Sequence record: MH383160.1
Strand: one strand, 5' to 3'
Length of the DNA: 64,000 nucleotides
Part shown: piece after piece, positions 766 through 64,000 of the stretch
Layout: the number at the start of each line of letters is the position of its first letter
Numbering within the stretch: position 1 is the first letter of the stretch
Made by a program: the position numbers and the translations under genes
The notes under the pieces: generated by a model
Database searches by the model: none
What the model saw: only the letters and a program-made list of their open reading frames with translations
What the model was told of the DNA's origin: nothing

Positions 766-3700
766 TTACCAAGTGAAGAATCCATTGTTTACTGACGCAG
801 TACTTTTTTCATGAATACCAATATCCATATCCAAAATACCAAAAATATTCTCTAATTTTTTAGTTAGAACAATCTCTTCCATTTTTTCAGTATCAAATGG
901 TAGTTCCAAGAACCATTCTGGAAGATACTCAACACAGTCAATTGGATAACCAACAGCTTTAATTCCCATAGGATTATCTTTTAAGTTACAGACAATTACT
1001 TTTGTTCCATCTGTTACTTCTGGAACAGATTTATCATCATAAACTTCACGTAGACGGTTCCATTGGATACCAGCAAGAACGTGACCAACTTTACACTTAC
1101 CAGTTAGCTGATATTCAGCCTCTAAATTAGTGTAGTTTTTTACAGTTTTTGGTGAACCTTTTTCATGTACAGGCATATCCTTAAATACGTCCTTAAACTC
1201 ACGTACACGCTGTTTTAGCTGTTGTTCACTCTCACCTACCAGTAATGCGATTAGAGTCTCTTCTAGGAAGTTCTGGATGTATTTTGGCGTGTCTGAGCGT
1301 TTAATTTCAAGACCCATCGCTTTGATTTCACCTGGTTTACCATCAATATCTTTACGGAACCCATCTTCCCAGTACTTCAGAATTGCATAACGTTTTTTCT
1401 TCAAGAATAGGCCACGTGAACCAACCATCTCAAGGTCTGCACCAACAATCTTACCTTTTTCAATACCAGTGTTGAACATCTCATGCATAAATGATGGGAA
1501 AGATTCACCAACTTCTTCACCAATTTTAATATACATATCAACAATCTCTTCTTTAGATAGATTATATGGAATACCTTGTTCTTTCAGATAATGAGTTACA
1601 CTAAAGTAAACTGAGTCAGTATCACCATAAATTACTGAACCACCTTGGTGGTTATATACACCAGTAGTAATTTCATTGATACGACTTGCCATATGTTTGG
1701 TCATAGAACGTCCAGTTAATGTTACGGATTGACCTAAACGTTTGTCAAAAAAACGAGAACCTTTGTTCAATAGTGCACCATATAGACTGTTTAGAAGAAT
1801 CTTACGAATCTGTTGGTTCTGTTTCCAGAAAGCACTACGTTGTTTGAAGTAATCTTTTTCTTCTTTAGGACAGAAAATACGACCATCTTTTAGTACTAAT
1901 CCGTTTTCTACAATCAACTTAGCAACTTCATCCCACTGTCCTTTACCAATTTCTTTACGAAGTAAGTATACAGGATCATTATCATGAATATTAGTTCTAA
2001 ACATTGTACCAGGGGTATAGTTTGATAGTAGTGGTTCAACTTTTTCATAGCCATTAAACTCCCAACCATCAGTATACATATGTTTGTAGTCAATGACCAT
2101 TTTTTGCTGTGCTTTACGTTCAGAATACCATTGAGTTAGAATGTCAGGAATTACACCAGACTTAGACTTATCAAAAAGTGTTCCGTTTGCACTAAGTACA
2201 ATAGTACTATCTTCTGCAAAAATAATATCATATAGCTCTTTGCCCGTTGCTTTAAAAGAACTCCCATCTTCTAAATCAACAATCAATGTTTCTTCTGACT
2301 TTTCATGAACCATTGTAAATTCAACAGCAGCAAATAAACCATGCCATGCCGCAGTCCAATCTGGTTCAAATGATTTAGATTTAGATTTGTTCTTCTGTTC
2401 TTGGATTTTAGCTGCAAGATACGCATCGGTGTAATCTTGACGTAATTGACCAAGAATACATTCAGTACTCATACCCAAAGTACGTAGAACAGTAGGGTAA
2501 AGAGAGTTAAAGTCAGTACACCCAAGGTCACTTACAAGTCCTAGTACTGGATCTTGTACCCATGCACCTGCTGCTTTTGCACTAATTTTCTCATCTTCTT
2601 CTTCACCATCTTCACCATAATATTCCATTTCTGGATCAAACTCAAGATCATCTTTCGGTGCTTTGTTGAAAACAACTTCACCACGAGTATGTGCTAAGTT
2701 GATAATAGCAGTGTCGATTAGTGCTACTGAACCCATTGTTGTACTGATAAGTACACATTCTTTGTGTGCAAGTCGATTGTGTAGGTTGATATAGTCACAT
2801 TTAGCATCAATCTTTTTAAGAAGAATACTATCCTGTTTAGAATAACGCAAGAAAGTAATGTAATCCTCTCTGTAAAGTTTATCCAATGAACCTTCATAGG
2901 ATACTTTATTTTCTTTAGTTACTTTTTCAGCAATATAATCTAGTTTATAAGATTGTTCAACTTGACCAGCATGTTTCTTATACAAAGCCAAATAATCAAG
3001 ATGGACGCGACCTACCAGATCATATGTTTGAACAGTTTTACCAAAGTTGTCTGCTTCACGTGAATTTGGTTTTTTATTCCATAAACACCAACGAGCAGTT
3101 GTTGCTTCATTGAAGATTTTTTTAGTTCGATTGATCATATATGGAATATCAAAGAATTCACTATTCCATCCTGAAATAACATCAGAATCATCAATTAAAC
3201 TAAAGAATTCCATAAACATTTCCTTTTCGTCTGTATATAAAATTACAGTACTGTTAGGATCGTTTGTTTCTTCATTTAGTTGGCGAACAATATCTTGTGC
3301 TTCATAAATTTCCATATCAGCAGGTGGTAAAGTAAGTACATAATCCTTTCCAGTCCATGATTGATATAGAGAAATAGCGGTTACTCGGTTAAACGGGTCT
3401 GATGGTGGAGCATAACCAAATTTCTTATGGAAATCAGTCTCGATATCGAAGAACACGATGTTCAAATCGGGTGAGCCTTTTCCCATATATTCTTTAGCTA
3501 ATGTTTTAAATGTAATGTTACAATCACTTTCAAAAATACGTAGACCTTCACTTTTGTGTTGCTCTACACTTTTATTCATTTGAGCTTGAGTTTGAAACTC
3601 AAAATGTTTAGCCATTGTACCATAAACAGTTTTATGTGTTCCTTGTGGGGATTCAACATAATATTCAAATACTGGATCTAATTCGCGTAGAATACGTTTA

Positions 3701-3771
3701 CCATTCTTACGTTCAACTACATGAAGAATATCACCAGTACGTTTACGTTCCATATAAGCATCGATATACAT
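766..3771 (-). CDS. Family B DNA polymerase (T4 gp43-like) with 3'-5' exonuclease
   Basis: ExoI FFDIETD, ExoII GWNSEFFDIPY, ExoIII YSKQD; motif A DFNSLYP, motif B KILLNSLYG, motif C YGDTDS. No intein signature seen. Confidence 0.97.
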   Translation of the reverse strand: MYIDAYMERKRTGDILHVVERKNGKRILRELDPVFEYYVESPQGTHKTVYGTMAKHFEFQTQAQMNKSVEQHKSEGLRIFESDCNITFKTLAKEYMGKGSPDLNIVFFDIETDFHKKFGYAPPSDPFNRVTAISLYQSWTGKDYVLTLPPADMEIYEAQDIVRQLNEETNDPNSTVILYTDEKEMFMEFFSLIDDSDVISGWNSEFFDIPYMINRTKKIFNEATTARWCLWNKKPNSREADNFGKTVQTYDLVGRVHLDYLALYKKHAGQVEQSYKLDYIAEKVTKENKVSYEGSLDKLYREDYITFLRYSKQDSILLKKIDAKCDYINLHNRLAHKECVLISTTMGSVALIDTAIINLAHTRGEVVFNKAPKDDLEFDPEMEYYGEDGEEEDEKISAKAAGAWVQDPVLGLVSDLGCTDFNSLYPTVLRTLGMSTECILGQLRQDYTDAYLAAKIQEQKNKSKSKSFEPDWTAAWHGLFAAVEFTMVHEKSEETLIVDLEDGSSFKATGKELYDIIFAEDSTIVLSANGTLFDKSKSGVIPDILTQWYSERKAQQKMVIDYKHMYTDGWEFNGYEKVEPLLSNYTPGTMFRTNIHDNDPVYLLRKEIGKGQWDEVAKLIVENGLVLKDGRIFCPKEEKDYFKQRSAFWKQNQQIRKILLNSLYGALLNKGSRFFDKRLGQSVTLTGRSMTKHMASRINEITTGVYNHQGGSVIYGDTDSVYFSVTHYLKEQGIPYNLSKEEIVDMYIKIGEEVGESFPSFMHEMFNTGIEKGKIVGADLEMVGSRGLFLKKKRYAILKYWEDGFRKDIDGKPGEIKAMGLEIKRSDTPKYIQNFLEETLIALLVGESEQQLKQRVREFKDVFKDMPVHEKGSPKTVKNYTNLEAEYQLTGKCKVGHVLAGIQWNRLREVYDDKSVPEVTDGTKVIVCNLKDNPMGIKAVGYPIDCVEYLPEWFLELPFDTEKMEEIVLTKKLENIFGILDMDIGIHEKSTASVNNGFFTW

Positions 3772-3800
3772 CGTTTGTATTCCCTTACGTTTATTAAGTT

Positions 3801-3828
3801 AAAAAGAAAGCCTCCGTCATTGGAGGCT
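3801..3828 (-). terminator. Rho-independent terminator between the dsbA-like gene and the polymerase
   Basis: Stem AGCCTCC/GGAGGCT (3809-3815, 3822-3828) followed on the minus strand by TTCTTTTT. Confidence 0.75.
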
Positions 3829-3850
3829 ATTTAATATATTTTAGTACTAA

Positions 3851-4214: not shown

Positions 4215-4217
4215 TTA

Positions 4218-7142: not shown

Positions 7143-8240
7143 TTACTTAAAAGTATTTACAATTTCTAAAACACTTTCAAGATACTTAGCATCAAATGTT
7201 TCAGTAAATCCTGACGGTAACTCTTCAGTACTTACAACACCACTTTCAATGTATTTCTTTATGAACTTTTCCAACAGTAATGGTTGATTTCCATCTTCAA
7301 AGTAGCGTTCTACTAGTACTTCATGTTCGAACCCAGAATTACGACTTTGTTCGTTTACACGGCGTTTCATATCACCAGTGATTCCATATTTGTACACCGT
7401 CTTGTCATTGTTAGTTAGTTTTTGAACATAGAAATATCCAGGTTTTGATGGTTGATATCCATATTCACCACATGATGGACATCCTTTACCAGCCATATGT
7501 GCTTTTGGTTGTTGGGAGAAGACACCATGAGTCGGACATACAATATCAATATAATTCTCGCTTAAAGTATATTCAACCAAGCTATAATCATACTTATGGT
7601 TATGTATAGGCGACACAAGTTCAATGAAACGTTCAGTGCTTCTTCCACCTTTACCAGAACATGTACCGCAGCCAGTTTTACCGACGATTAAAGTTTTTGG
7701 ATCTACTGTCCAGTCATGATGTCCTTTTGTGCAATGAACCGTTACTTTAGTTTTCTGATTGACATAAACAGTATTTGTCAAATCCAATGCATCACCATAG
7801 TTTTCTTTTACTTTTGCAGTGAATGATTCAGTACTGTATGCTTCATTTTTATTACACACAGGACATCCCTTACCAGAAAGAAATTTGTTTGGTGTTATTT
7901 CAAAGTAATCGTTGTGCTCTTCATCAGTGCAAAAGAGTGTTACTTTTGTTATAGCGTTAGTGTAATTTAGTTTATCAAATTTGAATTTATCTTTACCAAA
8001 TTTAGTTTCTACCGTGCTGATGAATGTGTCGTTGTTTGAACGTTGCGACATGTTTGAATAACATGATGCACATGTACATGCAATGTGACGAAGTGCAGGT
8101 TTTGTGTTTTCTTTTCCACACTTGTTACATTTCACTGTTGTTTTACTTGCTTTGAATACTAAAGTACTGAAATCAAATTCACCATACTTAGCAGTCATTT
8201 TGCTGATAAACTCTTCTTTGTTGATACTTACGTTTGGCAT
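7143..8240 (-). CDS. Free-standing putative homing endonuclease: tandem zinc-ribbon repeats plus C-terminal GIY-YIG-like domain
   Basis: About four repeats of the form F...YDYSLVEY...IVCPTHGVFSQQPKAHMAGKGCPSC with CxxC pairs; C-terminal GYFYVQKL...YKYGITG...RRVNEQ...E; located immediately downstream of the major capsid gene. Confidence 0.7.
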   Translation of the reverse strand: MPNVSINKEEFISKMTAKYGEFDFSTLVFKASKTTVKCNKCGKENTKPALRHIACTCASCYSNMSQRSNNDTFISTVETKFGKDKFKFDKLNYTNAITKVTLFCTDEEHNDYFEITPNKFLSGKGCPVCNKNEAYSTESFTAKVKENYGDALDLTNTVYVNQKTKVTVHCTKGHHDWTVDPKTLIVGKTGCGTCSGKGGRSTERFIELVSPIHNHKYDYSLVEYTLSENYIDIVCPTHGVFSQQPKAHMAGKGCPSCGEYGYQPSKPGYFYVQKLTNNDKTVYKYGITGDMKRRVNEQSRNSGFEHEVLVERYFEDGNQPLLLEKFIKKYIESGVVSTEELPSGFTETFDAKYLESVLEIVNTFK

Positions 8241-8386: not shown

Positions 8387-9562
8387 TTACATGAAAGTAA
8401 CGTTTTTGATAGCGATTTTGCTGTAGTAGTCCGCAGCGTTACCTAGTGAACTGGTGCTATCGGTCAACTGAACATACCCGTATCTGGTTAAGAAAGTTGT
8501 AACGAGTTCCCCAGTGTTAGGGTCCATTACAGTACCGGAAGCCATTAGTGGGATGTATGGGCAATAGAACACACCAGCATCAGTTTCTGCATTACCTTTA
8601 TAACCAATTAGAATATCTTCTGCATCACTTGCATAAGTATCAACAAAAATACGCATAGTGCTGTTTAGAGTACCTACAAACTTAACGTTAGTTGGTGCTT
8701 CGAAAGTACCTTCAGTGGTACGTGCAAAGCTAGAAGTAGTAGCAGATTGTAGAATGGTTAGTGCAGTTGGGGAAACAACAGCCCAGTTTGCAGCACCACG
8801 CTTAGTACGACGAGCAACTTCGTTTGCTTGACGGTTAATTAGAGTTGCTAGAGCAGCGTGCTCATCACCAACGAAGGTTGCAACACCAGTAACTTTAGAT
8901 TGGTCATAAGTTACAGCAGCAGCACCAGGTAGTGCACGTAGACGGCTTAGTAGCTCTTGGTCGATTTCTACGGTAACTTCTTGAGCGATTGCAGCCATTA
9001 GTTCTGCTTCAACGTCAACACCATGTTGGGATTGAGCATCTTGTGCAGATTCAACAGTCCAACGTGCAGATAGACGACGAGATTTCGCTTCAACAGTTTC
9101 ACGTAGAATACGGATGTTAACGCGACGACCCATAGTACCTTCTAGTTGGCTAGTAGGAGCAGCTTGTGGGTTGCTATTATCCGCATTTAGATCACCAGAG
9201 TAGGATTTAGCGATTTTGTATGGAGAAAGCATTTCTTCACCAGCGATAACACCAGGTGCGTTATCAGCATATTGCACACGTAGGGTGTGGATCTGACCAA
9301 CTGGACCAGTCATTGGTTGAACACCGATGATTTCGTTAGCAATAACGGTTGGCATTACACGACGCATAATTGGTAGAATCACTTTGTTTAGAGTAGCGAT
9401 GTTACCAGCGGTAGTTGCACCAGAAGTTGCGGATTCAGTTAGCATAACTTTACGATGGTTATCAAGAACAGTTTCCATTACAGACTTACGAGTACCCTGT
9501 AGACCTTCAACTAGTTTCTCTTTTACTGCTACCCATTTGGATTCATTTAGTAGTTGTGACAT
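8387..9562 (-). CDS. Major capsid protein (T4 gp23-like)
   Basis: IIGVQPMTGPVGQIHTLR, SRRLSARWTVESAQD, EIDQELL and FYCPYIPL...FLTRYG motifs; probable gp21 cleavage at LTE/S; strong codon bias. Confidence 0.96.
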   Translation of the reverse strand: MSQLLNESKWVAVKEKLVEGLQGTRKSVMETVLDNHRKVMLTESATSGATTAGNIATLNKVILPIMRRVMPTVIANEIIGVQPMTGPVGQIHTLRVQYADNAPGVIAGEEMLSPYKIAKSYSGDLNADNSNPQAAPTSQLEGTMGRRVNIRILRETVEAKSRRLSARWTVESAQDAQSQHGVDVEAELMAAIAQEVTVEIDQELLSRLRALPGAAAVTYDQSKVTGVATFVGDEHAALATLINRQANEVARRTKRGAANWAVVSPTALTILQSATTSSFARTTEGTFEAPTNVKFVGTLNSTMRIFVDTYASDAEDILIGYKGNAETDAGVFYCPYIPLMASGTVMDPNTGELVTTFLTRYGYVQLTDSTSSLGNAADYYSKIAIKNVTFM

Positions 9563-9607
9563 TATATATCTCCTTAAAGATGTTATATTCGTTTTTCAGT
9601 ATGATAT

Positions 9608-9615
9608 TATTTATA
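9608..9615 (-). promoter_or_regulatory. T4-type late promoter TATAAATA (major capsid gene)
   Basis: Exact TATAAATA on the minus strand upstream of the capsid gene; a gp55 sigma is encoded in the window. Confidence 0.85.
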
Positions 9616-9653
9616 GAACTGAAAAATTTGATTATTAAAATGCTTTAAAATGT

Positions 9654-10769
9654 TTATTTTTTATTGATACCTGAAAGAACATCGAGTTCTTTTAGGAATG
9701 CCATATCGTCAGCGGTCATTTCTTCGCTTTCAACAATAGCCTGACGGTTGCCAGTGATTACTTTACCTTCTGCAAGAGTTTTCTTAGCGGAAGACTGAAC
9801 TGCTTGACGAGTGGTAGCAGATTCATTTACTTTAGTACCGTTAAGTACTGACTTATGGTACTTGCTGAAATCTTCTTTAAGCTTTTCAGTAGGTGAAGTA
9901 GCTAGAAGGGATTCCATAATTTGTTTTTGCTGTGCAGTTAGTGGTTTTACTAGTTCAGACATAATCGCATTACGTGCTTGTGCATCTTCCATAATACGTA
10001 GTTTGGTTTTAGCAGCTTTAACGGCATTAGCAGTTTCATGTAGTTCTTGCTTAACTTGAGCAATTTCATCTTCTTTAGATTTAATTGATTCAGTTAGGGA
10101 ACGTAGCAATGAGTTTTCATTAAATTGTTTGACATTAAACTCTTGAGCAAATGCTTCAAAGATTTTACGACCAAACATATTTTGTTTTGCTTCCACTAGA
10201 TCTTGTTTCAACGCATATAGATTCTTCTGAGTGGTTTCTGCAATATATTTAGCAGCACTTTCAGATGTACGTTTGATGAAGTTATTACGAGCTTCAGCAA
10301 TTTGACGTGAACCTTCAGCAAGTAGTTTAACGCGAGTTTCAACTAGTTGACGTTTTTCAGTGTGGAATTCTTTTAGCTCTTCTGCTAGGATACCGTTAGA
10401 AAAATTAACGAATTTACCCATGCATTCATGAAGATGCTTACGTTCTTTACGCATTTGTTTAACTTCTTCAGCCAAAACAGAGTTTGAAAACGCAGAGAAA
10501 TTGCTTAGTGTTTTACGTAGAGTTACACGATCTTCAACGAGACGTTTTTTCTCTTCATATACAGCACCCATTTCTTCAGCAATGACTTGAGTAACCATAG
10601 TGTTCAAACCTTCGGTTAGTTCAGCCAAATCTTGCTGATAACGGCCTTTCATTTCTTCACGCATCTCTGCGGCTAGTGTATTCTTTTCTTCATTCCATGC
10701 TTCCTGAATTAGCTGTTTTGCCTCATCAGAAAGAGATGATTCTTTTAGAAGCTTTTCTAATTTAGACAT
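9654..10769 (-). CDS. Prohead core scaffold protein (gp22-like)
   Basis: Coiled-coil, E/K-rich protein located between the protease and the capsid gene; GRKIFEAFAQEF motif. Confidence 0.85.
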   Translation of the reverse strand: MSKLEKLLKESSLSDEAKQLIQEAWNEEKNTLAAEMREEMKGRYQQDLAELTEGLNTMVTQVIAEEMGAVYEEKKRLVEDRVTLRKTLSNFSAFSNSVLAEEVKQMRKERKHLHECMGKFVNFSNGILAEELKEFHTEKRQLVETRVKLLAEGSRQIAEARNNFIKRTSESAAKYIAETTQKNLYALKQDLVEAKQNMFGRKIFEAFAQEFNVKQFNENSLLRSLTESIKSKEDEIAQVKQELHETANAVKAAKTKLRIMEDAQARNAIMSELVKPLTAQQKQIMESLLATSPTEKLKEDFSKYHKSVLNGTKVNESATTRQAVQSSAKKTLAEGKVITGNRQAIVESEEMTADDMAFLKELDVLSGINKK

Positions 10770-10816
10770 TCGTTCTCTCCTTTAAGTACTGAAATATCTG
10801 TACTTCAACATACAGA

Positions 10817-10824
10817 TATTTATA
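10817..10824 (-). promoter_or_regulatory. Late promoter TATAAATA (scaffold gene)
   Basis: Exact match upstream of 10769. Confidence 0.8.
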
Positions 10825-10835
10825 TTTTTAAAATG

Positions 10836-11479: not shown

Positions 11480-12328
11480 TTATTTTAGTTTAGGTTGTGC
11501 TTTGCTTAGTGGTGATTTAGAATTAGATGCAGTAGTTTTTGGTGCTTTAACATCTTTCATTTCACCGCGAGCATTTTTACCAAGATCTAGACTATCTTTT
11601 GGTAGAACAGATTTATCATCTAGGTCTAGTAGTGGTGCTTGGTCAGTTTTCTTAGCGAATTTAACTGGCTCTGCTCCTGCTACTGGAGATTTAGCTTCTG
11701 GTGCTACTGGAGATTTGGAATGAGTGCCAGCTTTTTCTTTCTTATCAACTGGAGCAACTTTTTCTAGTTTGAAGGATTCACCGAATTTTTCATCACCGAA
11801 TTCAACATCAGCAAATTCGTCGTCACCGTCAACGCCAACTTCTTCTTCGCTATCTTCTACTTCTTCTTCAGAATCTAGATCAACTTCACCGTCACCGATT
11901 TCATCAAACATTTGTTGTAGGCCACGGAAAGCATCTTGGATTGATTCCCATTGGTCTTCGGAAGGAACATCAGCATCAGCTTTCACTTCAACGTCAACAT
12001 CGTCTTCACCGTCACCATCTGCATCAGCAGAGAATTCAACTTCTTCTTCTGCACTTTCATCTTCTTCACCAAGGGTGTATTCGATTTCAGCATTTAGACC
12101 TTCGTCTGGTTGTACATCAAAATCTTCGTCAAGCTTTTCTTCATCTTTGACTTTAACTTCGACTTCACAATCTTCATCGTCGTCTTCATCTTCCATGCTT
12201 TCTTCTAGTTGTTTGTTAATTTCTTGAGCTTGCTCAACGAAATACTTACGCATTTTTTTATCAGCAATATCTTGTTCGCCATTTGCAAACGCCGCAATTG
12301 CTTCTTGTAGTAGTTTTAAATTCGCCAT
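11480..12328 (-). CDS. Highly acidic prohead core protein (gp67/68-like position)
   Basis: The likely start is MANLK at 12328 (GGAGG RBS at 12334-12338). D/E-rich centre and basic tail; lies between portal and protease as T4 gp67/68 do. Confidence 0.6.
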   Translation of the reverse strand: MANLKLLQEAIAAFANGEQDIADKKMRKYFVEQAQEINKQLEESMEDEDDDEDCEVEVKVKDEEKLDEDFDVQPDEGLNAEIEYTLGEEDESAEEEVEFSADADGDGEDDVDVEVKADADVPSEDQWESIQDAFRGLQQMFDEIGDGEVDLDSEEEVEDSEEEVGVDGDDEFADVEFGDEKFGESFKLEKVAPVDKKEKAGTHSKSPVAPEAKSPVAGAEPVKFAKKTDQAPLLDLDDKSVLPKDSLDLGKNARGEMKDVKAPKTTASNSKSPLSKAQPKLK

Positions 12329-12429
12329 TATATCCTCCATAGATATATTACATTCGTATAAAGTATGATATTATTTAGTACTGAATAAAATCGCCTTTTT
12401 TAAAAGCTTTAAAAAGTGCGATTTTTGAT

Positions 12430-12657
12430 TTACATTAACCCAGAACCGTCACCAGTTGGTGCAGCGGCATAAACAACTGCAACCACATTTTTGCGGCGTT
12501 GTTCTTCATGTGCTTTAAATTCACGGTACTTTCTTAAGTTGTTTAATACTTGTAATGTTAGTTTCGGTTTTCTGGAATCAGTAATTTTATATACGTTCTG
12601 ATCATCTTCAGGGTCGTACATTGAATCACTGCTAGATTCAAAGATGTCCTTTAACAT
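12430..12657 (-). CDS. Small head-module protein (75 aa)
   Basis: Located in the head operon; SRKPKLTLQVLNNLRKYRE motif; late-like CATAAATA at 12722-12729. Confidence 0.65.
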   Translation of the reverse strand: MLKDIFESSSDSMYDPEDDQNVYKITDSRKPKLTLQVLNNLRKYREFKAHEEQRRKNVVAVVYAAAPTGDGSGLM

Positions 12658-18609: not shown

Positions 18610-18662
18610 CTATTTTTATAAAAATATTCATTAAGTACTTAAAATATTGCAAATAACTAATC

Positions 18663-18700: not shown

Positions 18701-19192
18701 ATGAAAAAAAGATTAAAAGATAGTAAGGATGCTGCAAACTATCGAAACGAATTGCTAAAGAAACAAAATGGAATAGATCCTATAATTAAAGAACCAATAA
18801 CTAAACCAGTACTGGATCACTACCACTATGGTAACCAACATTGTAGACAAGTTCTTCAAAATGAAGTCAATGCTTGGGAAGGAAAGGTACAAAACAGCTT
18901 CAATCGATATATGAAGCACTTAACTGATAAACCATTATATGAGGTACTCAGAAATCTTGCTGATTACTTAGAGCGTAATAACAGCATTCCTGACGATGAA
19001 CAAGTTATACATCACACTGCACTAACTGTGGATGTTAATAAGTTTAAAAGGCTTCCAGCAACACAGCAAACCGCGATTCTGGAAGGGTTAGGAGTTGTCC
19101 CTGGTAGTAACACTACTGCTCGTGTAAAGCAAGCTAGAAAGCTGATTAAGGACGGTAAATTAAATATGGTTGATATAAAAAAAGGGAGCTAA
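18701..19192 (+). CDS. Recombination/packaging endonuclease VII (T4 gp49-like)
   Basis: QNG...LDH.H...R.VL...N..EGK...FNR matches the T4 Endo VII layout, with catalytic D, H, N and E positions present. Confidence 0.8.
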   Translation: MKKRLKDSKDAANYRNELLKKQNGIDPIIKEPITKPVLDHYHYGNQHCRQVLQNEVNAWEGKVQNSFNRYMKHLTDKPLYEVLRNLADYLERNNSIPDDEQVIHHTALTVDVNKFKRLPATQQTAILEGLGVVPGSNTTARVKQARKLIKDGKLNMVDIKKGS

Positions 19193-29339: not shown

Positions 29340-29351
29340 ATATTTTAGTAC

Positions 29352-29359
29352 TATAAATA
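29352..29359 (+). promoter_or_regulatory. Late promoter TATAAATA (stand-alone lysozyme gene)
   Basis: Exact match, directly abutting an AGTACT at 29347-29352. Confidence 0.75.
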
Positions 29360-29375: not shown

Positions 29376-29864
29376 ATGAGTAAATGGGAAATTAAAAATA
29401 CAGATGAGCAATTTTTTAAGGAAATTAAAGAATTTGAAGGAACTATTGCTTATCAGAAAAAACTTGGTTATTTTAAAAATGATAAGTTTTGGGTATATAA
29501 AGACAGCTTAGGTCTTGATACTATTGGCTATGGTCACCTAGTTTTACCTGGTGAAAATTTCAAGAATGGTTTAACAGAAGCACAAGCTGACCAACTTCTT
29601 CTTAAAGATGCTCAAACTGCGTACAATGATGCAAAATCAATTTATGAACAATTTGGTATGACCGCACCTGTACAGGTTCAACGTGTATTATGGTTGATGG
29701 TATTCCAGATGGGCAAAACCAAAGTTTTAAAATTTAAAAAAGCAATGACCGCATTAGGTAAGGCTGATTATAAAACTGCTGGTAAGGAATTGCGTGATAG
29801 TACATGGTATAAACAAACCACTTCAAGAGCGGAAAAGATGGCACGTATTGTTGAATCCGTATAA
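29376..29864 (+). CDS. T4-type (GH24) lysozyme, paralogue of the gp5 C-terminal domain; candidate endolysin
   Basis: KEFEG...YKDSLGLDTIGYGHL (E-D-T triad), MVFQMG, DSTWYKQT. Confidence 0.88.
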   Translation: MSKWEIKNTDEQFFKEIKEFEGTIAYQKKLGYFKNDKFWVYKDSLGLDTIGYGHLVLPGENFKNGLTEAQADQLLLKDAQTAYNDAKSIYEQFGMTAPVQVQRVLWLMVFQMGKTKVLKFKKAMTALGKADYKTAGKELRDSTWYKQTTSRAEKMARIVESV

Positions 29865-56327: not shown

Positions 56328-59300
56328 ATGTACTCAATAAAAACTGACTTAGATATTACTGGTGCTGGTACGGTTGGTAAGGATCTTTTAGTCAAAGGAA
56401 ATGCTGTTTTCAATAATAACCTAACTGTAAATGGTACTGTAACTTTTGCAAATGCAACATTTACTGCCATTGAATCATCAACTGCCAACATTACATCTAC
56501 TTTAGATGTAGGTGGAAAAGCAACACTTTCTGGTGGTCTTGGTGTTGAGGGTAATACTACAATCGGTAGTGCAGTTGTCGGGTCTGATACAGCAACAATT
56601 AATTCAAACGCTACCTTTAACGGTACTGTATCAGTTGGTTCTGATTTTACACAAACTGCTGGTACAACCACTCTACAAGCAACTAAAGTTAAAAACTTAG
56701 AAGTTGCTGAAACAACAGCATTTAAAGGTAATATTACTGCTGATGTTGGAACTACTGCTGCATTTGATAAAATTACTGCTAATACCGCAGAAATTACTAA
56801 TGTAAGTACAACAGATATTAGTAGTACTGGTACTGCTGCATTTAAAGATGTGACAATTAGTGGTACACTTGGTGGTGAGTTCAATCTATCCGATTTAAAT
56901 GCGGTAACATTAAATGTTTCTGGTGCATCTAACCAACAAGGTGCTGTAACTTTCGGTGCTAACGTAACTGGTATTAACAGTACTGCTACCTTTAAAGATA
57001 TTCGTATTGGTTCTAACTCTGAATCACAAACTTTCAGATTAAGCTTCCCTTACACTGCTCCAGGCAAACGTCCAACTGTAATTCTACAAAACGAAATTCA
57101 GTCCGAGTTAATGTCACCTGCAAACTTAACAGTATTGACATCTGCTTCTTTTGGTAATGCGTCATTATCTTCTTATGGTATTACTGGTAATGGTCTAAAC
57201 AAATTAGATTATCTAACAGTTTCTGGTAACAATACACAATCACCAGACACCCCACTATTAGAAGTTCAAAAAGGAAAAACCAAAGTTGCCGATTTTGAAG
57301 TTACAGGAACCGCAACTATACCAAATATTGAAAGTACTGGAACTGCTAATTTTAATAATATTAATATTTCTGGTCTTCTTGGTGGAACATTCCAACTAGA
57401 TGATATTAATGCAGTAACATTGAACGTTACTGGGGCCACTTCGTTAGTTGGTGGTGTTACTCTTGGTTCTAATATTACTGGTTATAATAGTACTGCTACC
57501 TTTAAAGCTATCAGCTTAGGCCAAAGTAGTCAAGATTCTGCTGTAAAACTTGGATTTGGATATACTGCACCAAGTCAACGTCCAACCGTAATTTTACCTA
57601 ACGAAGTTCAATCAGAATTAGTTTCTCCTTCTACATTGAACGTTCTAAAAACGGCAACTTTTGGTAATGCTGCACTTTCTACGTATGGTATTACTGGTAA
57701 TGGCCTAAACAAATTAGATTACCTAACCATTACAGGTAACGCAACACAAGACCCTAGTACACCATTCCTACAAGTTGGTGGTAAAGCAATTCTTAATGAT
57801 GTCGATTTTACTGGTACAGTAACTGGGCTAACTGTTGATGTAAGTGGTCAGGATCTAACACCAAACTCAGTTGTTGCTGCGACAAATATTAAAGGTGCAA
57901 CCCTTGAAAGTACGGGAAACACTACTGTGGGTGCAAAACTAACGGTTACTGGTGACATTGCTGGTACAACCGCAACCCTTTCTGGTGCATTATCCGCTGG
58001 TTCAGTAAGTTCTGGTGTTATTACGGGTACAACTTCGGTATCTGCACCAACAATTAGTGCATCTACTGAAGTAACAGCTCCTACTATCACTGCGAGTGGA
58101 ACTGTAAGTGGGCAAACAATTAACGGTACGAATATTAGTGCAACAACTCTGACTGCACCAACTATTAGTGGTAATACTAACTTCACAGAAAATGTTGATA
58201 TTACTGGAAATCTAACAGTTACTGGTACAGTAACCCCAGGTACAATTGATTTGAGTACTACTGATGTTAGTGCGAAATCAATCACTACTACCGCTGGTGC
58301 AAATATTGGTGGCGATCTTGTGGTTCAAGGTTCTTTTGATTTATCAGCAGCAGACATTAACGTTAAATCACTAACTTCTTCTGGTATTGTTAAAAGTAAT
58401 GACCTTGTTAATGCTAACGTACTTCCTGTACTTAATAGTACTACCATAACGGCAACTACTGTTAATGCTGATGATATAACTGTTACCGGATCTGCTAATT
58501 TGGGTACAATTTACTCAAGCTCATCTGTTCTAGTTGGGTCAACTTTAACTGTAACTGGTGAAACTACAACTGCATCGTTGGTTACCCCAACCATTTCAAA
58601 TGCAAGTGGTGTCACTATTTCCAATAATACAAATGTAACTGGTGACCTAACCGTTACTGGTGCAGTTATTCCAGGCTCTATCGATCTAGCAACAACTGAT
58701 GTTAATGCTAAATCCATTACTACTACTGCTGGTGCAAATATTGGTGGTAACCTAACGGTTGCTGGTACAGTAGATCTTTCAACTGCTGATGTAACTGTCA
58801 AATCTTTGACTAGTACTGGTGCGATTGTAAGTAATGAATCCACTATTAGTAGTGTTCTACCTAAACTACAAAGTACTGATGCAACTATTGCAACACTTGG
58901 TTCAACAACTGCAAATATTACTAATTTGAATGTCACTGGTGCATCTACTGTTGCTGATGTAACTTCTTCAGGTAAAGTAAAAGCAGTTTCGGTTGAAACC
59001 CCAACAATTAGTAATGCTGATGGTGTATCAATTTCTAATAATACATCTATTACTGGAAATCTAACAGTTTCTGGTACAGTAACACCAGGTGCGATTGATT
59101 TGAGCACAACTGATGTTAGTGCAAAATCCATTACAACTACTGCTGGTGCAAATATTGGTGGTGATCTAGTTGTGGCTGGTACAGTTGACTTAAGTGGTGC
59201 TGATGTATCTGTTAAATCGCTAACAAGTAGTGGTATTATTACAGTAAGTAGTGTAGAAGGTATTAACGTTCTACCTAAAGTACAAAGTACTGAAGTTACT

Positions 59301-62207
59301 GCAACTGCACTAAATGCAACAAATGCAACAGTTTCTGGTGATGTTTCAGCAGCAACTGCAACTATTTCGGGTGCAATTACTGGTGGTTCTGCAACACTAT
59401 CTGGTGCTGGTACTGCTCTAAATGTAACTAATAATGCAACTATTGGTGGTGCACTTACTGTTGGTTCTATTACTTCAGCAGCAGAAAATGTATCCATTAC
59501 TAAAAATACCGCAGTCACTGGTAATTTAGCAGTGTCTGGTACGCTCACTGCTGGTATTATTGATTTGAGTACAACTGATGTTTCTGTGAAGACTTTAACT
59601 TCTCTTGGTGACGCAACCGTTCGTGGTAACTTAACTGTTGATGGTTCTATTGACCTAAGTTCTGCAAACATCGTCGGTGTAACACTAGAAAGTACTGGCT
59701 CTACCACTGTAGGTACTGATTTGATTCTAACTACAGGTAACATTACAGGTAGTCCATCTATTTCTGGTAACTTGGGTGTTACTGGAACCACAACGTTAAC
59801 TGGTGCAACTACAGTTTCAAACACATTGTCAACTGGTGGTAAACTGACAGTTAATACTGGTGGTATTCAAGTAGTTGATGGTGGTATTCAAGTTGATGCA
59901 GGAACTATTACCGCACCAAGTGCTAATATTTCTGGTAACTCTACCCTTAATAGTGCAACTGTAACTACTACCCTTGGTGTTACTGGTGCAGCTAGTATGA
60001 ATGGTGGCCTTACAGCATCTACCCTAGATGTAACTGGTGACAGTACTGTACAAAAACTAACTGTCAAGGGTGCATTTATTCCTGAAGGTGGTTTGGACCT
60101 ATCCGGTGCTGATCTTAACGTTAATAGCGTAACTGCTGCAACCACATTAAGTGTTACTGGTGCAAGTACTCTAACTGGTGGTGTTTCCACTTCAACTGTT
60201 ACTGCATCCGGTAAGGTAACCGCACAAGAATTAAGTACTGGTACATTGGCAGTAACCACAAATGGAACAGTTGGTGGTACTTTAGATGTAACTGGAAAGG
60301 CAACAGTCGGTTCACTAGATTCAGGTGCAATATCTGCAACTTCTGGTACATTTAGTACTACACTAGGTGTAACAGGTGCAGCAACATTTGGTAACAATGT
60401 TAATATTACTGGTACGTTAACCCCAGGTGCATTGGATTTATCTAGTACTGATGTAGATGCTAACAGTCTTTCTGTTGCAACAACCCTACATTCAAACGGC
60501 AATGCAACAATCGGTGGTACACTAGGTGTAACTGGTGCAGCAACTGCTCCATCAATCGCTCTTAATGGTGAAGGAACTGCATTAGCAGTTACTAACAATG
60601 CAACAATTGGTGGTACACTAGGTGTAATTGGAAAGGCAACTGTCGGTTCACTAGATTCAGGTGCGGTATCTGCAACTTCTGGTACATTTAGTACTACAAT
60701 AGATGTAACTGGTGCAGCAACCTTTGGTAATAATGTTAACATTACTGGTACATTAACGCCAGGTGCATTGGATTTAGCTAGTACTGATGTAGTTGCAAAC
60801 AGTCTTTCTGTTGCAACCACACTACATTCAGATGGTAATGCAACAATTGGTGGTACATTAGGTGTAACTGGTGCAGCAACTGCTCCATCAATCACTCTTA
60901 ATGGTGAAGGAACTGCATTAGCAGTTACTAACAATGCAACAATTGGTGGTACACTAGGTGTAACTGGTGCAGCAACTTTAGGTTCACTAACAACTTCTGG
61001 TGCAGTGAAAACTGGTTCTAATGTTATTATTGGTACTAAGATCGGTGAACAACCAGAAACAGTTCAGATTTTCCCTAACACTTACATTGCAGGTTCCTTG
61101 CGTGTAGATGGTGGTATCAACGCTGATATTGATGTTAGTGGTCAAACAATCGAACCTTATGCAGTTGTTGCGGCTGACACTATTAGTGCAGCGGGTAATA
61201 TTACTTCTGGTGCAGAGTTGATTTCTAAATCAGCAACTATTGGTGATGTTGGTTCACAAAACAACAACTTAACAATCAATGGTAACGTAGTTAACAACGG
61301 TAACTTTACAGTAACTGGTGTTCTAAACGCAACACTAAACCAAGCAAACTCTGATGTAGCTGTTAAATCATTAACTGCAACCAACAGTGTTGCTGCTGGT
61401 ACTAGCATTACCGCAGGTACAAGTATTACTGCAACTGGTCTGCTAAAAGGGAACACCCTTGAAGTAACTACTACTGGTTCATTTGGTGGTGCAGTAACAA
61501 TGTCAAGTGGTGCTAACATTACTGGAACCGTTGGGATTACTTCTGGTAACCTAACTGTTGGTGGTGATATTTCTGCAACAGGTACTGCAACCCTAGCAGC
61601 AACTTCAGTAACTACTATTACTACTTCTGGTGCAGCAACACTTGCTAGTGCATCTGTTACTGGAGCAGCAACAATCGGTGGTACTTTAACTGTTACTGGA
61701 TTAATGACTGCAAATGGTAGTGTTGTTTTAGGTGACGCGGCTGCTGATACATTAACTGTCAATGCAACATCTTCTTTCAAAGAAAATGCAGTATTTGATA
61801 AAGATGTAACTGTAACTGGTCAATTAACAACTACTAATGCTGACTTGACTACTACAACAGTAACTACTAAAAAATATGATGTTATTCCTAATCAAGTAAC
61901 TTCTTCTGTTATTGCACCAACTGGCACTTGGACCCCAGACGGTACTAGCAACGTATACTTTATCACTCTAGATCAAGATACAACTCTAGCACCAATCACT
62001 GGTCTAATCGGTGGTGGTAAAGCATCTTCAGTATACATTTATGTAAAACAAGATGCAACAGGTAATAGAAACTTTACTACTGATGGTACTTATGCGGTTG
62101 TTGATGGAACTCTAAACAAAGCTGCTGGTAGTGTGACCATTTACCAAGTCATTTATGACGGTGTTAGTCCAGTAGCAGATATGTTTATTGCACAACGTAC
62201 AGCTTAA
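56328..62207 (+). CDS. Long repeat-built tail fibre (1959 aa; T/G/S/V/A-rich beta-solenoid or triple beta-helix)
   Basis: Recurrent GGxLxVxG and IDLSTTDVSAKSITTTAGANIGG units; internal 170-aa and 112-aa duplications; distinct C-terminal domain. Confidence 0.75.
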   Translation: MYSIKTDLDITGAGTVGKDLLVKGNAVFNNNLTVNGTVTFANATFTAIESSTANITSTLDVGGKATLSGGLGVEGNTTIGSAVVGSDTATINSNATFNGTVSVGSDFTQTAGTTTLQATKVKNLEVAETTAFKGNITADVGTTAAFDKITANTAEITNVSTTDISSTGTAAFKDVTISGTLGGEFNLSDLNAVTLNVSGASNQQGAVTFGANVTGINSTATFKDIRIGSNSESQTFRLSFPYTAPGKRPTVILQNEIQSELMSPANLTVLTSASFGNASLSSYGITGNGLNKLDYLTVSGNNTQSPDTPLLEVQKGKTKVADFEVTGTATIPNIESTGTANFNNINISGLLGGTFQLDDINAVTLNVTGATSLVGGVTLGSNITGYNSTATFKAISLGQSSQDSAVKLGFGYTAPSQRPTVILPNEVQSELVSPSTLNVLKTATFGNAALSTYGITGNGLNKLDYLTITGNATQDPSTPFLQVGGKAILNDVDFTGTVTGLTVDVSGQDLTPNSVVAATNIKGATLESTGNTTVGAKLTVTGDIAGTTATLSGALSAGSVSSGVITGTTSVSAPTISASTEVTAPTITASGTVSGQTINGTNISATTLTAPTISGNTNFTENVDITGNLTVTGTVTPGTIDLSTTDVSAKSITTTAGANIGGDLVVQGSFDLSAADINVKSLTSSGIVKSNDLVNANVLPVLNSTTITATTVNADDITVTGSANLGTIYSSSSVLVGSTLTVTGETTTASLVTPTISNASGVTISNNTNVTGDLTVTGAVIPGSIDLATTDVNAKSITTTAGANIGGNLTVAGTVDLSTADVTVKSLTSTGAIVSNESTISSVLPKLQSTDATIATLGSTTANITNLNVTGASTVADVTSSGKVKAVSVETPTISNADGVSISNNTSITGNLTVSGTVTPGAIDLSTTDVSAKSITTTAGANIGGDLVVAGTVDLSGADVSVKSLTSSGIITVSSVEGINVLPKVQSTEVTATALNATNATVSGDVSAATATISGAITGGSATLSGAGTALNVTNNATIGGALTVGSITSAAENVSITKNTAVTGNLAVSGTLTAGIIDLSTTDVSVKTLTSLGDATVRGNLTVDGSIDLSSANIVGVTLESTGSTTVGTDLILTTGNITGSPSISGNLGVTGTTTLTGATTVSNTLSTGGKLTVNTGGIQVVDGGIQVDAGTITAPSANISGNSTLNSATVTTTLGVTGAASMNGGLTASTLDVTGDSTVQKLTVKGAFIPEGGLDLSGADLNVNSVTAATTLSVTGASTLTGGVSTSTVTASGKVTAQELSTGTLAVTTNGTVGGTLDVTGKATVGSLDSGAISATSGTFSTTLGVTGAATFGNNVNITGTLTPGALDLSSTDVDANSLSVATTLHSNGNATIGGTLGVTGAATAPSIALNGEGTALAVTNNATIGGTLGVIGKATVGSLDSGAVSATSGTFSTTIDVTGAATFGNNVNITGTLTPGALDLASTDVVANSLSVATTLHSDGNATIGGTLGVTGAATAPSITLNGEGTALAVTNNATIGGTLGVTGAATLGSLTTSGAVKTGSNVIIGTKIGEQPETVQIFPNTYIAGSLRVDGGINADIDVSGQTIEPYAVVAADTISAAGNITSGAELISKSATIGDVGSQNNNLTINGNVVNNGNFTVTGVLNATLNQANSDVAVKSLTATNSVAAGTSITAGTSITATGLLKGNTLEVTTTGSFGGAVTMSSGANITGTVGITSGNLTVGGDISATGTATLAATSVTTITTSGAATLASASVTGAATIGGTLTVTGLMTANGSVVLGDAAADTLTVNATSSFKENAVFDKDVTVTGQLTTTNADLTTTTVTTKKYDVIPNQVTSSVIAPTGTWTPDGTSNVYFITLDQDTTLAPITGLIGGGKASSVYIYVKQDATGNRNFTTDGTYAVVDGTLNKAAGSVTIYQVIYDGVSPVADMFIAQRTA
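56890..57790 (+). repeat. Diverged internal duplication, 510-nt (170-aa) period, approximate ends
   Basis: NAVTLNV...NSTATFK...YTAP..RPTVIL.NE.QSEL.SP...YGITGNGLNKLDYLT occurs twice; matching NSTA codons at 56979 and 57489. Confidence 0.8.
60295..60966 (+). repeat. Recent tandem duplication, 336-nt (112-aa) period
   Basis: GAAAGGCAAC..GGTTCACTAGATTCAGGTGC starts at 60295 and again at 60631, with high nucleotide identity along the unit. Confidence 0.88.
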
Positions 62208-63051: not shown

Positions 63052-63057
63052 TTAATA

Positions 63058-63083
63058 AAGGTCAACTATTGTTGACCTTTTTT
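63058..63083 (+). terminator. Terminator
   Basis: AAGGTCAAC-TATT-GTTGACCTT followed by a T run. Confidence 0.75.
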
Positions 63084-63105
63084 GTTTCATTATAAGGAAA
63101 AATAT

Positions 63106-64000
63106 ATGTATAATATAAGAACAGATATTATTGTAAATGGTGATATTAGTTATGACGGAGAACTAATAGGCAAGATACCAGTGCCTGATATTAGTACTAA
63201 AAATAAAAATATTTTAATTCATGAAAGTGATGGTTTATATGTTCCAGATAACACTATTATCTATCAAGGTGGAACTGGTATATCAATATCCTCTAATTTA
63301 ATATCCACAAAAATAAGTTCAACACAAGGAAATATTCTTAGTAATGATTCTAATGGTTTATATGTACCTGATAATACAGTAACATATACAGGTAGTGACA
63401 GTATTAAAATAGATAATAATATTATATCATCAAAAATAAGCACATCTTTAGGAAATATCCTTACAACTGATAGTACTGGTCTATTCGTACCGGATAATTC
63501 GATAACTTACAATGCTGGTACTGGCATTACTATTAGTGATGATGTAATAAGTGTGAAGGTTGACCCGACATCAGAAAACATACTATCTTCTACAAGTAAT
63601 GGTCTATTCGTACCTGATAATTCAGTATCTTATAGTGCTGGTTCCGGTGTTTCTATCAGTGGTGAAGTAATCAGTACTAAAATTAGTTCTACTTCTGGTA
63701 ATATACTATCTACTGACAGTACTGGATTATTTGTACCTAATACAAGAATAAATTACGTTGGTGGTACTGGTATATCTATTAGTTCAGAAACAATTTCAAC
63801 TAAAATAAGCACAACTCCAGGAAATACGTTAACAACTGACGTAAATGGGTTGTATGTTCCAACTGGACCATCCTCATATACTGCGGGAAATGGTATATCT
63901 ATTGACGCTAATGTAATTTCATCTAAAATCAGTAATACCTCTGGTAATATATTAACATCAGATAGTACTGGACTTTTTGTCAATGGAGCAAATACTACTA
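63106..64000 (+). CDS. Second repeat-built fibre protein, 3'-truncated by the window edge and absent from the ORF track
   Basis: ATG at 63106 with AAGGA RBS; the frame is open to 64000. MYNIRTDIIVNG resembles MYSIKTDLDITG of the 56328 fibre. It then has 41-aa repeats GL(Y/F)VPDN...Y..G.GI.IS...IS.KIS...GNIL..DS., with seven GL(Y/F)V starts visible. Confidence 0.85.
   Translation, partial: MYNIRTDIIVNGDISYDGELIGKIPVPDISTKNKNILIHESDGLYVPDNTIIYQGGTGISISSNLISTKISSTQGNILSNDSNGLYVPDNTVTYTGSDSIKIDNNIISSKISTSLGNILTTDSTGLFVPDNSITYNAGTGITISDDVISVKVDPTSENILSSTSNGLFVPDNSVSYSAGSGVSISGEVISTKISSTSGNILSTDSTGLFVPNTRINYVGGTGISISSETISTKISTTPGNTLTTDVNGLYVPTGPSSYTAGNGISIDANVISSKISNTSGNILTSDSTGLFVNGANTT

Follow-up and report, generated by a model that had tools for sequence, protein, structure and literature searches.

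The stretch of DNA analyzed here (the window) comprises nucleotides 1–64,000 of the genome of Escherichia phage UB (MH383160.1; Asteriusvirus PBECO4), a 353-kb jumbo myovirus of the Rak2/PBECO4-like group. The window contains the DNA polymerase gene, head and baseplate modules, a gene for a virion protein of 3323 amino acids (aa), and the genes of long tail fibers. The palindromic hexamer AGTACT, a Type II recognition site (ScaI, Eco255I), was found in it exactly 120 times between positions 799 and 63969, with a mean spacing of 531 bp. A preliminary description made from the sequence letters had estimated about 120 sites, one per roughly 530 bp, against 20–25 expected from base composition, and both estimates proved accurate. 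Dinucleotide-preserving shuffles gave 20.1 ± 4.1 copies (maximum 34; none of the 100 shuffles reached 120), and the expectations of Markov models of orders 1, 2, 3, and 4 were 20.4, 31.3, 51.1, and 95.5, respectively, the last value being inflated because AGTAC and GTACT themselves belong to the motif. Among all 4096 hexamers of the window, AGTACT ranks first for over-representation, followed by GTACTG and CAGTAC, which are its own extensions. Chance and base composition were rejected by these shuffles and models. The start positions of the sites are as follows:

Sites 1–20: 799, 1371, 1892, 2203, 2464, 2543, 3247, 3843, 4977, 6045, 6336, 7068, 7083, 7227, 7315, 7830, 8163, 9844, 10785, 12377
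Sites 21–40: 13127, 13487, 13790, 14234, 15620, 15904, 16516, 16862, 17512, 17545, 17688, 18634, 18808, 19244, 19531, 19612, 20892, 21261, 21463, 22766
Sites 41–60: 23872, 23926, 24892, 25112, 25442, 25505, 25671, 27231, 27249, 27774, 29156, 29347, 30337, 30348, 30664, 30872, 32510, 32803, 33462, 33767
Sites 61–80: 34143, 35013, 35278, 35343, 35425, 35637, 35688, 36171, 36633, 36897, 38874, 39276, 39333, 40059, 40470, 40681, 41916, 42460, 43032, 44468
Sites 81–100: 44507, 46121, 46885, 47180, 47854, 48892, 49209, 50220, 50520, 51153, 51219, 51258, 52253, 53854, 54861, 55577, 56123, 56823, 56979, 57333
Sites 101–120: 57489, 58254, 58437, 58812, 58872, 59286, 59691, 60042, 60165, 60234, 60354, 60444, 60690, 60780, 62758, 63193, 63472, 63673, 63718, 63964

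According to the deposited annotation, 113 of the 120 sites lie in coding sequences (CDS), 74 of them in plus-strand and 39 in minus-strand genes. The frame is AGT-ACT in 79 cases, xxA-GTA-CTx in 22, and xAG-TAC-Txx in 12. The occurrence of the sites on both strands and in different frames had been pointed out in the preliminary description, as had the frequent 5′ C and 3′ G and seven intergenic positions, which coincide exactly with those derived from the annotation:

3843–3848: upstream of the DNA polymerase gene (766–3771, minus strand)
10785–10790: 4 nt upstream of the Shine-Dalgarno sequence of the scaffolding-protein gene (9654–10769, minus strand)
12377–12382: between the CDS 11480–12328 and the CDS 12430–12657
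18634–18639: upstream of the endonuclease VII gene (18701–19192, plus strand)
29347–29352: overlapping a T4-type late-promoter word (AGTAC-TATAAATA) upstream of the lysozyme gene 29376–29864
30337–30353: a pair of sites 11 bp apart (30337 and 30348) upstream of the baseplate-wedge gene 30377–33838

As for the flanks, C is present at position –1 in 50 and G at position +1 in 60 of the 120 sites, compared with a background of about 17%. The hexamer with both flanking bases forms the octamer CAGTACTG, of which the window contains 26 copies spanning 3246–63724:

Octamer starts 1–13: 3246, 6044, 6335, 7829, 15619, 18807, 19243, 22765, 27248, 27773, 30336, 32802, 35342
Octamer starts 14–26: 35687, 36896, 38873, 39275, 40680, 44506, 46120, 51218, 54860, 56978, 60041, 62757, 63717

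The contribution of coding was assessed by permuting synonymous codons within each gene, with the amino acid sequence and the codon usage of each gene fixed; this shuffle is conservative because the codons of the sites themselves remain in the pool. In the CDS of the window, 108 AGTACT sites were counted versus 32.0 ± 4.9 after shuffling (maximum 51 in 500 shuffles), and 24 copies of CAGTACTG versus 1.6. The excess also persisted when the frequency of the inner tetramer was controlled for: GTAC occurs 366 times in the window, and the A..T-flanked form accounts for 120 of these copies versus 39 expected (p = 4e-30). The spacing of the sites is slightly more even than random (median 360 bp, coefficient of variation 0.89, largest gap 1978 bp). 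Duplicated contexts explain at most 5 of the 120 sites, and the five repeated context pairs are located in tail-fiber segments. Internal tandem duplications with periods of 510, 336, and 246 bp are present in tail-fiber genes at 56823–57494, 60354–60785, and 63472–63969, with AGTACT in every repeat.

The excess is not confined to the window. In the first 350 kb of phage UB, to which all genome-wide figures below refer, AGTACT occurs 901 times versus approximately 100–120 expected, and all 10-kb bins are enriched (11–65 sites versus 3.3 expected). Codon-preserving shuffling leaves 223 ± 12.6 coding sites where 759 are observed, and each of the three frames has its own surplus. No other hexamer deviates as far from this null as AGTACT (z = 36), and CAGTACTG is in tenfold excess in CDS (157 versus 15.6). 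When seven regions are taken separately, which include early, middle, and late genes and both coding strands, the enrichment over shuffled codons is 2.9–3.9 in every one, and none of the 26 genes of 1.5 kb or more lacks the site (0.6–3.3 per kb). Its density is 2.4 per kb in coding and 4.6 per kb in intergenic DNA, and 84% of the sites are intragenic. Around start and stop codons the density hardly varies, apart from doubling in the adjacent intergenic DNA and dropping at the ribosome-binding site.

The same pressure is visible in synonymous codon choice and in the proteins themselves. The codons AGT-ACT write 383 of the 718 Ser-Thr pairs of UB (53%; 15% expected). Val-Leu pairs are written as GTA-CTN 323 times (expectation 138), with A as the last base of the codon before them in 73% of cases versus 33% overall; the third frame, xAG-TAC-Txx, occurs 132 times versus 21 expected. 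Among over-represented dipeptides, ST takes the first, VL the second, and QY the fourth place, and these are the pairs that (C)AGTACT encodes in its three frames; the reversed dipeptides TS and LV are at expectation. The excess over shuffled sequences together with this dipeptide imprint indicates a pressure at the DNA level that is sufficiently strong to alter amino acids. The earlier supposition that protein sequence would not suffice to explain the sites is thus upheld by the shuffles and the dipeptide imprint, as well as by the conservation of the trait in the clade described below.

The flanks of the sites in UB are dyad-symmetric: T-rich at –4/–3, C at –1 (G disfavored), G at +1 (C disfavored), and A-rich at +3/+4. 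The two extended forms are nearly equally frequent on the sense strand (CAGTACT 313, AGTACTG 366). Hence, the excess of AGTACT is imposed at the DNA level, is dyad-symmetric, and does not depend on gene class. As both core and flanks are symmetric, double-stranded recognition by a two-fold symmetric protein is favored over an RNA-level or strand-specific signal.

Among the palindromes of UB, AGTACT is the sole positive outlier (3.45 of the expectation, the next value being 1.5). The distribution is sharply bimodal: 26 palindromic hexamers are present in 0–1 copies (CTGCAG 1 versus 77, CAGCTG 1 versus 61, GGTACC 0 versus 49, CCATGG 0 versus 30), and the remaining ones are at about 1.0 of expectation (ACGCGT, CACGTG, AACGTT, TGTACA). 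In addition, the tetramer GCGC is completely absent from the 350 kb, with approximately 156 copies expected in CDS alone. A decay of methylated AGCGCT/GCGC into AGTACT/GTAC was considered and rejected because the source pool (~16 AGCGCT and ~156 GCGC expected) is far too small for ~540 excess sites. The words AGTGCT and AGCACT are mildly raised.

Relatives of UB were sampled as orthologous regions of about 45 kb each in eight phages belonging to four genera, with 64–83% nucleotide identity to UB. In all of them (Ec-M-J, A4, EJP2, RaK2, GAP32, CBB, XbC2, and Serratia BF), AGTACT is the top hexamer, at 6.1–8.3 times the order-1 expectation, and GCGC is absent. When the codons of five orthologous genes were aligned (20.8 kb), the UB sites proved to be kept 1.7–2.5 times as often as generic hexamers in the same frame, and 112 of the 204 AGTACT columns are present in a single genome only. 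Thus, the density of the sites is conserved across the Rak2-like clade while their positions turn over. With this retention and the shuffles above, both conditions that the preliminary description had named for a refutation were put to the test, and neither refuted the idea. The phage XbC2 (L011), recorded as a Xanthomonas phage, is a Mimasvirus close to GAP32 and CBB; its signature (AGTACT 7-fold, GCGC 0, 36% GC) equals that of the enterobacterial relatives and is an odd match with a high-GC host.

Outside the clade the picture is different. No enrichment was observed in T4 (7 versus 9.4) and rV5 (6 versus 9.3), and AGTACT counts were 3 versus 14.3 in the distant relative PA5oct, 0 versus 15.4 in phi92, and 4 versus 15.1 in Vibrio phage JSF5. 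Other phages avoid AGTACT, as expected of a ScaI/Eco255I-type target, and the remark in the preliminary description that the enrichment is the opposite of the usual phage habit agrees with these counts. A single 50-kb sample of E. coli K-12, used for the host frequency, contains three sites.

A scan of the IMG/VR database for two CAGTACTG octamers within 30 bp returned contigs of Rak2-like phages and a coherent family of contigs of ~31–35 kb with 40–44% GC, in which AGTACT is enriched 12–17-fold (loci L031, L034, L035, L052, L066, L067, L075, L101, L117, and L120–L122, among others). The genes of this second lineage encode a large serine integrase, an HNH endonuclease, a GpA-type terminase, a portal protein, a protease-capsid fusion, and a siphovirus tail module. 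No nucleotide match was found among cultured phages, and this family of siphovirus prophages of about 33 kb is apparently undescribed. Three integrated copies were analyzed, with AGTACT at 11–15 times the expectation:

Leclercia tamurae (L137): 106 AGTACT versus 7 expected, and 46 CAGTACTG, in 21.8 kb; GCGC = 0
Phytobacter diazotrophicus (L138): 72 AGTACT versus 5.2 expected; GCGC = 0
Yersinia pekkanenii (L139): 49 AGTACT versus 4.3 expected; GCGC = 0

Codon-preserving shuffles of the three prophages gave 94 sites versus 21.6, 67 versus 16.6, and 39 versus 11.3. The flank signature of the second lineage is the same as in UB, and so is the bias toward the dipeptides ST, VL, and QY. Deeply diverged members (25–45% protein identity) retain the AGTACT excess, and GCGC is absent from all members sampled. 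The next relatives, prophages of Atlantibacter with 31–32% capsid identity, contain 0–1 AGTACT and 72–82 GCGC; GCGC is also present in phi92, T4, rV5, and PA5oct. The AGTACT excess and the GCGC absence are both rare, occur jointly in two unrelated lineages, and are jointly missing from the outgroups of each; therefore, a common cause is called for.

The highest density of AGTACT in UB, up to 65 sites per 10 kb and 10 per kb in intergenic DNA, was noted at 190–220 kb, an early region of tiny minus-strand genes that are partly unannotated in the record. Pairs of sites 10–12 and 20–23 bp apart are common there. Some of the sites are embedded in early promoters: 15–18 sigma70-type promoters read TTGACA-N9-AGTACT-G-TATAAT, and in 19 promoters AGTACT abuts a TTGCAA –35 element; some carry both placements, 20 bp apart. 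In the minus-strand cassettes at ~195–213 kb, the first arrangement continues as TATAAT-AGTTTACAT and is followed by a leader with a conserved 5′ hairpin, GGGGAGAA-nnn-TTCTCCCC. The top density of the genome coincides with an array of about 20 unannotated head-to-tail open reading frames (ORFs) of 59–82 aa at 213.5–217.9 kb (L005:13493–17893, minus strand); no tRNA genes or non-coding RNA were found in the hotspot at 211–218 kb, which holds this array of tiny ORFs instead. The early region of CBB is richer in AGTACT than that of UB (162 per 50 kb), yet its sigma70-type promoters have no site in the spacer. Therefore, promoter embedding is a cassette feature of the UB lineage, and the genome-wide density is the conserved trait.

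The E. coli Chi octamer GCTGGTGG is present in UB in 9 plus-strand and 16 minus-strand copies, with ~0.7 of each expected in a calculation that has no codon-preserving control. Nine minus-strand copies cluster at 194.8–212.6 kb (194870–212634) in the early region and include an inverted pair at 212622/212634. Copies also occur at window positions 13518, 47546, and 53655, and three plus-strand copies lie in paralogous RCC1-like genes.

The explanation that we favor, with a probability of about 0.4, is that AGTACT, in the preferred form CAGTACTG within a weak T-rich/A-rich dyad, is a selected double-strand signal that constitutes a self-identity lattice on phage DNA and is read by a symmetric protein. 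A near-uniform lattice with one AGTACT per 390–530 bp would be kept over the entire phage genome by positive selection, and a two-fold symmetric, probably dimeric, sequence-specific protein would read it. The site may serve as an address label for phage DNA, on which the protein could load anywhere to organize or spare that DNA without bulk base modification. Such a role is suggested because AGTACT is approximately 40–80 times denser on phage DNA (2–5 per kb) than on the sampled host DNA (~0.06 per kb). The absence of GCGC, which occurs at ~7 per kb in the host, could be the negative counterpart of this label within one self/non-self scheme, in which, for instance, a nuclease would shred GCGC-rich host DNA. 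Bulk DNA of the Asteriusvirus fEgEco12 is cut as predicted by 10 restriction enzymes, ScaI not being among them (PMC13070987); therefore, bulk Asteriusvirus DNA is not hypermodified, and hypermodification does not provide the self-mark. It is doubtful, though possible, that a modification-free density code separates own from host DNA in both unrelated lineages of enterobacterial phages, having evolved twice or having been exchanged between them.

The preliminary description had proposed a selected DNA-level mark, such as a methyltransferase (MTase) target, a binding lattice for a genome-organizing protein, or a recombination or packaging signal. Selection at the DNA level was borne out, and the MTase target was not, as no enzyme family tracks the trait. 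A lattice for a symmetric protein fits the anatomy of the sites best, although no reader protein was found. A role in packaging or recombination is conceivable. The genome- and clade-wide extent of the excess, its recurrence in an unrelated prophage family, and its coupling to the complete loss of GCGC had been missed. No description of the AGTACT excess was found in the 8.4 million papers and preprints that could be searched, subscription-only literature lying outside this search; the genome papers on CBB, Sharanji, and fEgEco12 do not mention the motif, and for CAGTACTG the literature search returned only primers.

Several points weigh against the self-identity lattice. The search for a reader protein was negative, and the one candidate shared by both lineages, a zinc-finger/T5orf172 protein, does not track the trait. 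The intragenic spacing is near Poisson, with no clear helical phasing, and thus does not point to cooperative binding inside genes. A phage that otherwise purges restriction sites completely would be endangered by about 900 of the ScaI type if these were unprotected, so that some protection must exist. Moreover, the host frequency of AGTACT comes from one 50-kb E. coli sample, and the link between the loss of GCGC and the gain of AGTACT is a correlation over two lineages and outgroups rather than a mechanism.

The zinc-finger/T5orf172 protein and a T4-type lysozyme are the only proteins detectably common to UB and the second lineage. The former is encoded in the window at 7143–8240 (minus strand), next to the major capsid gene, and is annotated as a hypothetical protein. 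It contains several treble-clef zinc fingers (DUF4379/CapR-type) and a C-terminal T5orf172 domain. A paralog is located at UB 247334–248107, and relatives are RaK2 ORF085w, for which the annotation records an RB49 relative, a CBB “endonuclease”, and a protein of the Leclercia prophage (L137:4421–5284). The gene looks like a mobile gene of the homing-endonuclease type within a structural operon. As a shared reader or nuclease the protein was rejected, since its distribution is sporadic and it is missing from the sampled regions of the Phytobacter and Yersinia prophages (L138 and L139).

An alternative explanation, in our opinion unlikely, is that AGTACT is the target of a phage-encoded MTase, providing a methylated self-mark or protection from ScaI/Eco255I that was co-opted for a function rewarding density. 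A phage that purges 26 palindromic hexamers yet keeps 901 ScaI-type sites needs immunity at these sites, and other coliphages purge AGTACT, as phi92 does. Candidate enzymes do exist in both lineages. Only two DNA MTases were recognized in UB, a Dam-type N6A enzyme (PF05869) and a C5 enzyme of 286 aa; a motif scan of all ORFs for a third, hidden amino-MTase returned only the Dam-type enzyme. The C5 MTase gene (UB 286400–287260, L006:36400–37260, minus strand) is conserved in the clade. Its product aligns over all 286 aa with the catalytic domains of mammalian DNMT3A/B/C (E ~1e-23), better than with M.HaeIII or M.HhaI, and its target-recognition region is very small, with little room for a domain recognizing 6–8 bp. 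The nearest homolog outside the clade (51%) belongs to phi92, which has no AGTACT sites, and the compact DNMT3-like enzyme was rejected as the writer. No homologs of either UB MTase were found in the second lineage.

In the second lineage, the Leclercia and Yersinia prophages encode a gamma-class N6A MTase of an uncharacterized family, the homologs of which carry the PF26055 domain (Mtase_EDM2). The family is also present in GAP32 and GAP32-like contigs and in the non-enriched phage rV5. No tblastn match to it was obtained in UB, a 21.8-kb sample of the Phytobacter prophage revealed no member, and it is absent from CBB (PMC5259590). The EDM2-like enzyme was rejected as a shared writer, being absent from UB and CBB and present in rV5. 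This family comprises more than 280 proteins, hardly any of which are annotated, and in the GAP32-like contigs L142–L145 its gene (10001–10834) adjoins a gene encoding a GmrSD_N protein (8598–9779), which is type IV restriction-like. Overall, no MTase family co-varies with the trait: the nearest outside homolog of the C5 enzyme is in phi92, the EDM2-like enzyme occurs in rV5 and neither in UB nor in CBB, and the second lineage lacks the MTases of UB. Furthermore, methylation would account for the tolerance of AGTACT, not for its 3.5–10-fold excess.

Somewhat less likely still is a genome-wide replication or recombination signal, for example, a preferred primase start, a nicking or entry site for recombination-dependent replication, or a word that modulates a helicase-nuclease as Chi does. 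The trinucleotide 5′-CTG is present on both strands of CAGTACTG, and the palindrome would give independence of orientation. The density is uniform over the genome irrespective of gene class and strand, the spacing of 0.4–0.5 kb is close to the scale of Okazaki fragments, and UB encodes its own primase, helicases, gp46/47 nuclease, and endonuclease VII. The density peak at 190–220 kb, with its 10 intergenic sites per kb, also coincides with the cluster of Chi octamers. However, known primases use trinucleotides, which need no enrichment, and among the annotated ORFs of the second lineage, a small temperate siphovirus, no replication module was recognized. Nor is any nuclease or primase common to both lineages.

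A functionless molecular drive, in which context-biased repair or gene conversion of the Dcm/Vsr kind turns near-matches into AGTACT, is improbable. It would agree with the fast turnover of positions at constant density and with the uniform enrichment across gene classes. The words expected as deamination products show a weak effect (AGTATT 0.86 and AATACT 0.81 of the codon-shuffle expectation), and the C5 MTase gene of UB is overlapped at its 3′ end by a downstream ORF, as in dcm-vsr. However, neither Pfam nor NCBIfam indicated a Vsr or nuclease domain in this ORF, and a dcm-vsr-like pair was rejected on the lack of a Vsr signature. One-mismatch neighbors of AGTACT in UB range from 0.76 to 1.59 of the codon-shuffle expectation and are not depleted as a class. 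The two unrelated lineages would each need a phage-borne version of such a system, and they have no such gene in common; the lack of enrichment in the sampled host DNA rules out a drive encoded by the host. In addition, the octamer excess, 10-fold in UB and up to ~150-fold in the second lineage, is far above known repair-driven biases.

The same low probability is assigned to a protein of the host (Enterobacterales) that reads AGTACT and that both lineages converged on recruiting or titrating. The host order is the clearest common point of the two lineages, and one common reader would easily explain their identical extended flanks. The SlmA-binding sequence (SBS) GTGAGTACTCAC contains AGTACT, and its half-site needs G1, T2, a purine at position 3, A4, and G5 (PMC3020112). 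In contrast, position 3 is C or T in 72% of the UB sites, G1/T2 are not enriched, and in 350 kb of UB the word GTnAGTACTnAC occurs once and GTGAGTACTCAC not at all. SlmA itself was rejected as the reader, as the outer positions of the phage sites are incompatible with it. We know of no other enterobacterial regulator with an AGTACT-type operator.

It is very improbable that AGTACT is an operator or promoter element for temporal control of transcription, such as the site of an early-promoter repressor, with the intragenic copies being incidental. The approximately 35 early promoters of UB that carry the site in a fixed position, and the closely spaced pairs at 190–220 kb, would be in line with such a role. 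On the other hand, most sites are intragenic, the profile around gene starts is nearly flat, and the early promoters of CBB do without the site in a region that is richer in it. The general promoter/operator reading is thereby largely refuted, the fixed position relative to –35/–10 being seen only in the early cassettes of UB, and no fixed relation was found between AGTACT and TATAAATA late promoters. The late-promoter word itself and its complement are strongly avoided in UB genes under the codon-shuffle null (TATTTAT 5 versus 95, ATAAATA 12 versus 64, TATTTATA 1 versus 30), as would be expected if spurious late promoters were purged from both strands. Finally, the probability of a by-product of codon usage, dipeptides, internal repeats, or avoidance of other words is negligible: although 79 of the 120 window sites are Ser-Thr codon pairs, many of them in repeat-bearing tail-fiber genes, and AGT and ACT are common codons, this reading is refuted by the codon- and protein-preserving shuffles and the dipeptide imprint, by the enrichment in all frames and in intergenic DNA, by the bias in the third base of the preceding codon, and by T4 and phi92, which have a similar GC content and show no excess.

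Phage genomics regards short palindromes as liabilities removed by selection, and here one palindrome is driven up. AGTACT dictates more than half of the Ser-Thr codon pairs and shifts the dipeptide composition of the proteome encoded by 350 kb, which implies a protein–DNA recognition system of large effect that is annotated in none of these genomes. If the self-marking code were true, it would represent a third route by which phages distinguish themselves, beside base hypermodification and the proteinaceous nucleus, and would explain the takeover of the host by jumbo phages that are nucleus-less and unmodified. In practice, an AGTACT observed/expected ratio above 5 together with GCGC = 0 can be used as a cheap classifier for these phages in metagenomes, and the density of the sites is relevant to recoding and engineering of Asteriusvirus phages considered for therapy.

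Among known systems, Chi (GCTGGTGG) and RecBCD resemble the AGTACT pattern in that a short word is over-represented genome-wide, is mostly intragenic, and shapes codon choice; the function of Chi is the discrimination of own and foreign DNA by a traveling enzyme. Chi is asymmetric, orientation-biased, host-owned, and occurs about once per 4.5 kb, whereas AGTACT is palindromic, phage-owned, and approximately 10 times denser. Since AGTACT with its preferred flanks is palindromic, it carries no orientation information and has no strand bias of the Chi type. Both signals coexist in UB, where Chi octamers are over-represented too (25 versus ~1.4). The uptake signal sequences (USS) of Pasteurellaceae and the DNA uptake sequences (DUS) of Neisseria are also spread genome-wide at ~1 per kb, lie mainly in genes, leave an imprint on peptides, and keep their density while positions turn over, and AGTACT behaves likewise. 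Unlike AGTACT, they are asymmetric words of 9–12 nt kept by biased uptake and recombination in competent bacteria. The carriers of AGTACT are a clade of virulent jumbo phages and a prophage family, not a naturally competent organism, and the sampled host chromosome is not enriched; to our knowledge, no comparable step of DNA uptake exists for these phages.

The stoperators of cluster A mycobacteriophages (L5, Bxb1) are likewise sites of one protein dispersed in a phage genome, and some UB copies of AGTACT overlap early promoters. However, stoperators are asymmetric 13-bp sites bound by a prophage repressor, with ~20–35 copies per genome lying in short intergenic gaps in one orientation, whereas AGTACT is a palindrome of 6–8 bp with ~900 mostly intragenic copies per genome and is found in a virulent jumbo phage too; it does not have the features that define stoperators. 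Nucleoid-occlusion sites (the SBS of SlmA and the Noc-binding sequence, NBS) are closer in form, being palindromic, scattered, non-transcriptional, and bound by a dimeric protein, and AGTACT is the core of the SBS. The outer positions of the SBS are missing in the phage sites, and SBS number only 24–52 per 4.6 Mb. The Dcm/Vsr repair bias is similar as an MTase-linked process that raises its own target word, but here no Vsr homolog was found, the neighboring words are not depleted, and the effect is far larger. As for the avoidance of restriction sites in phages, it is extreme in the same genomes (26 hexamers and GCGC), and AGTACT is itself a Type II site; for this palindrome, the sign is reversed to a 3.5–10-fold excess.

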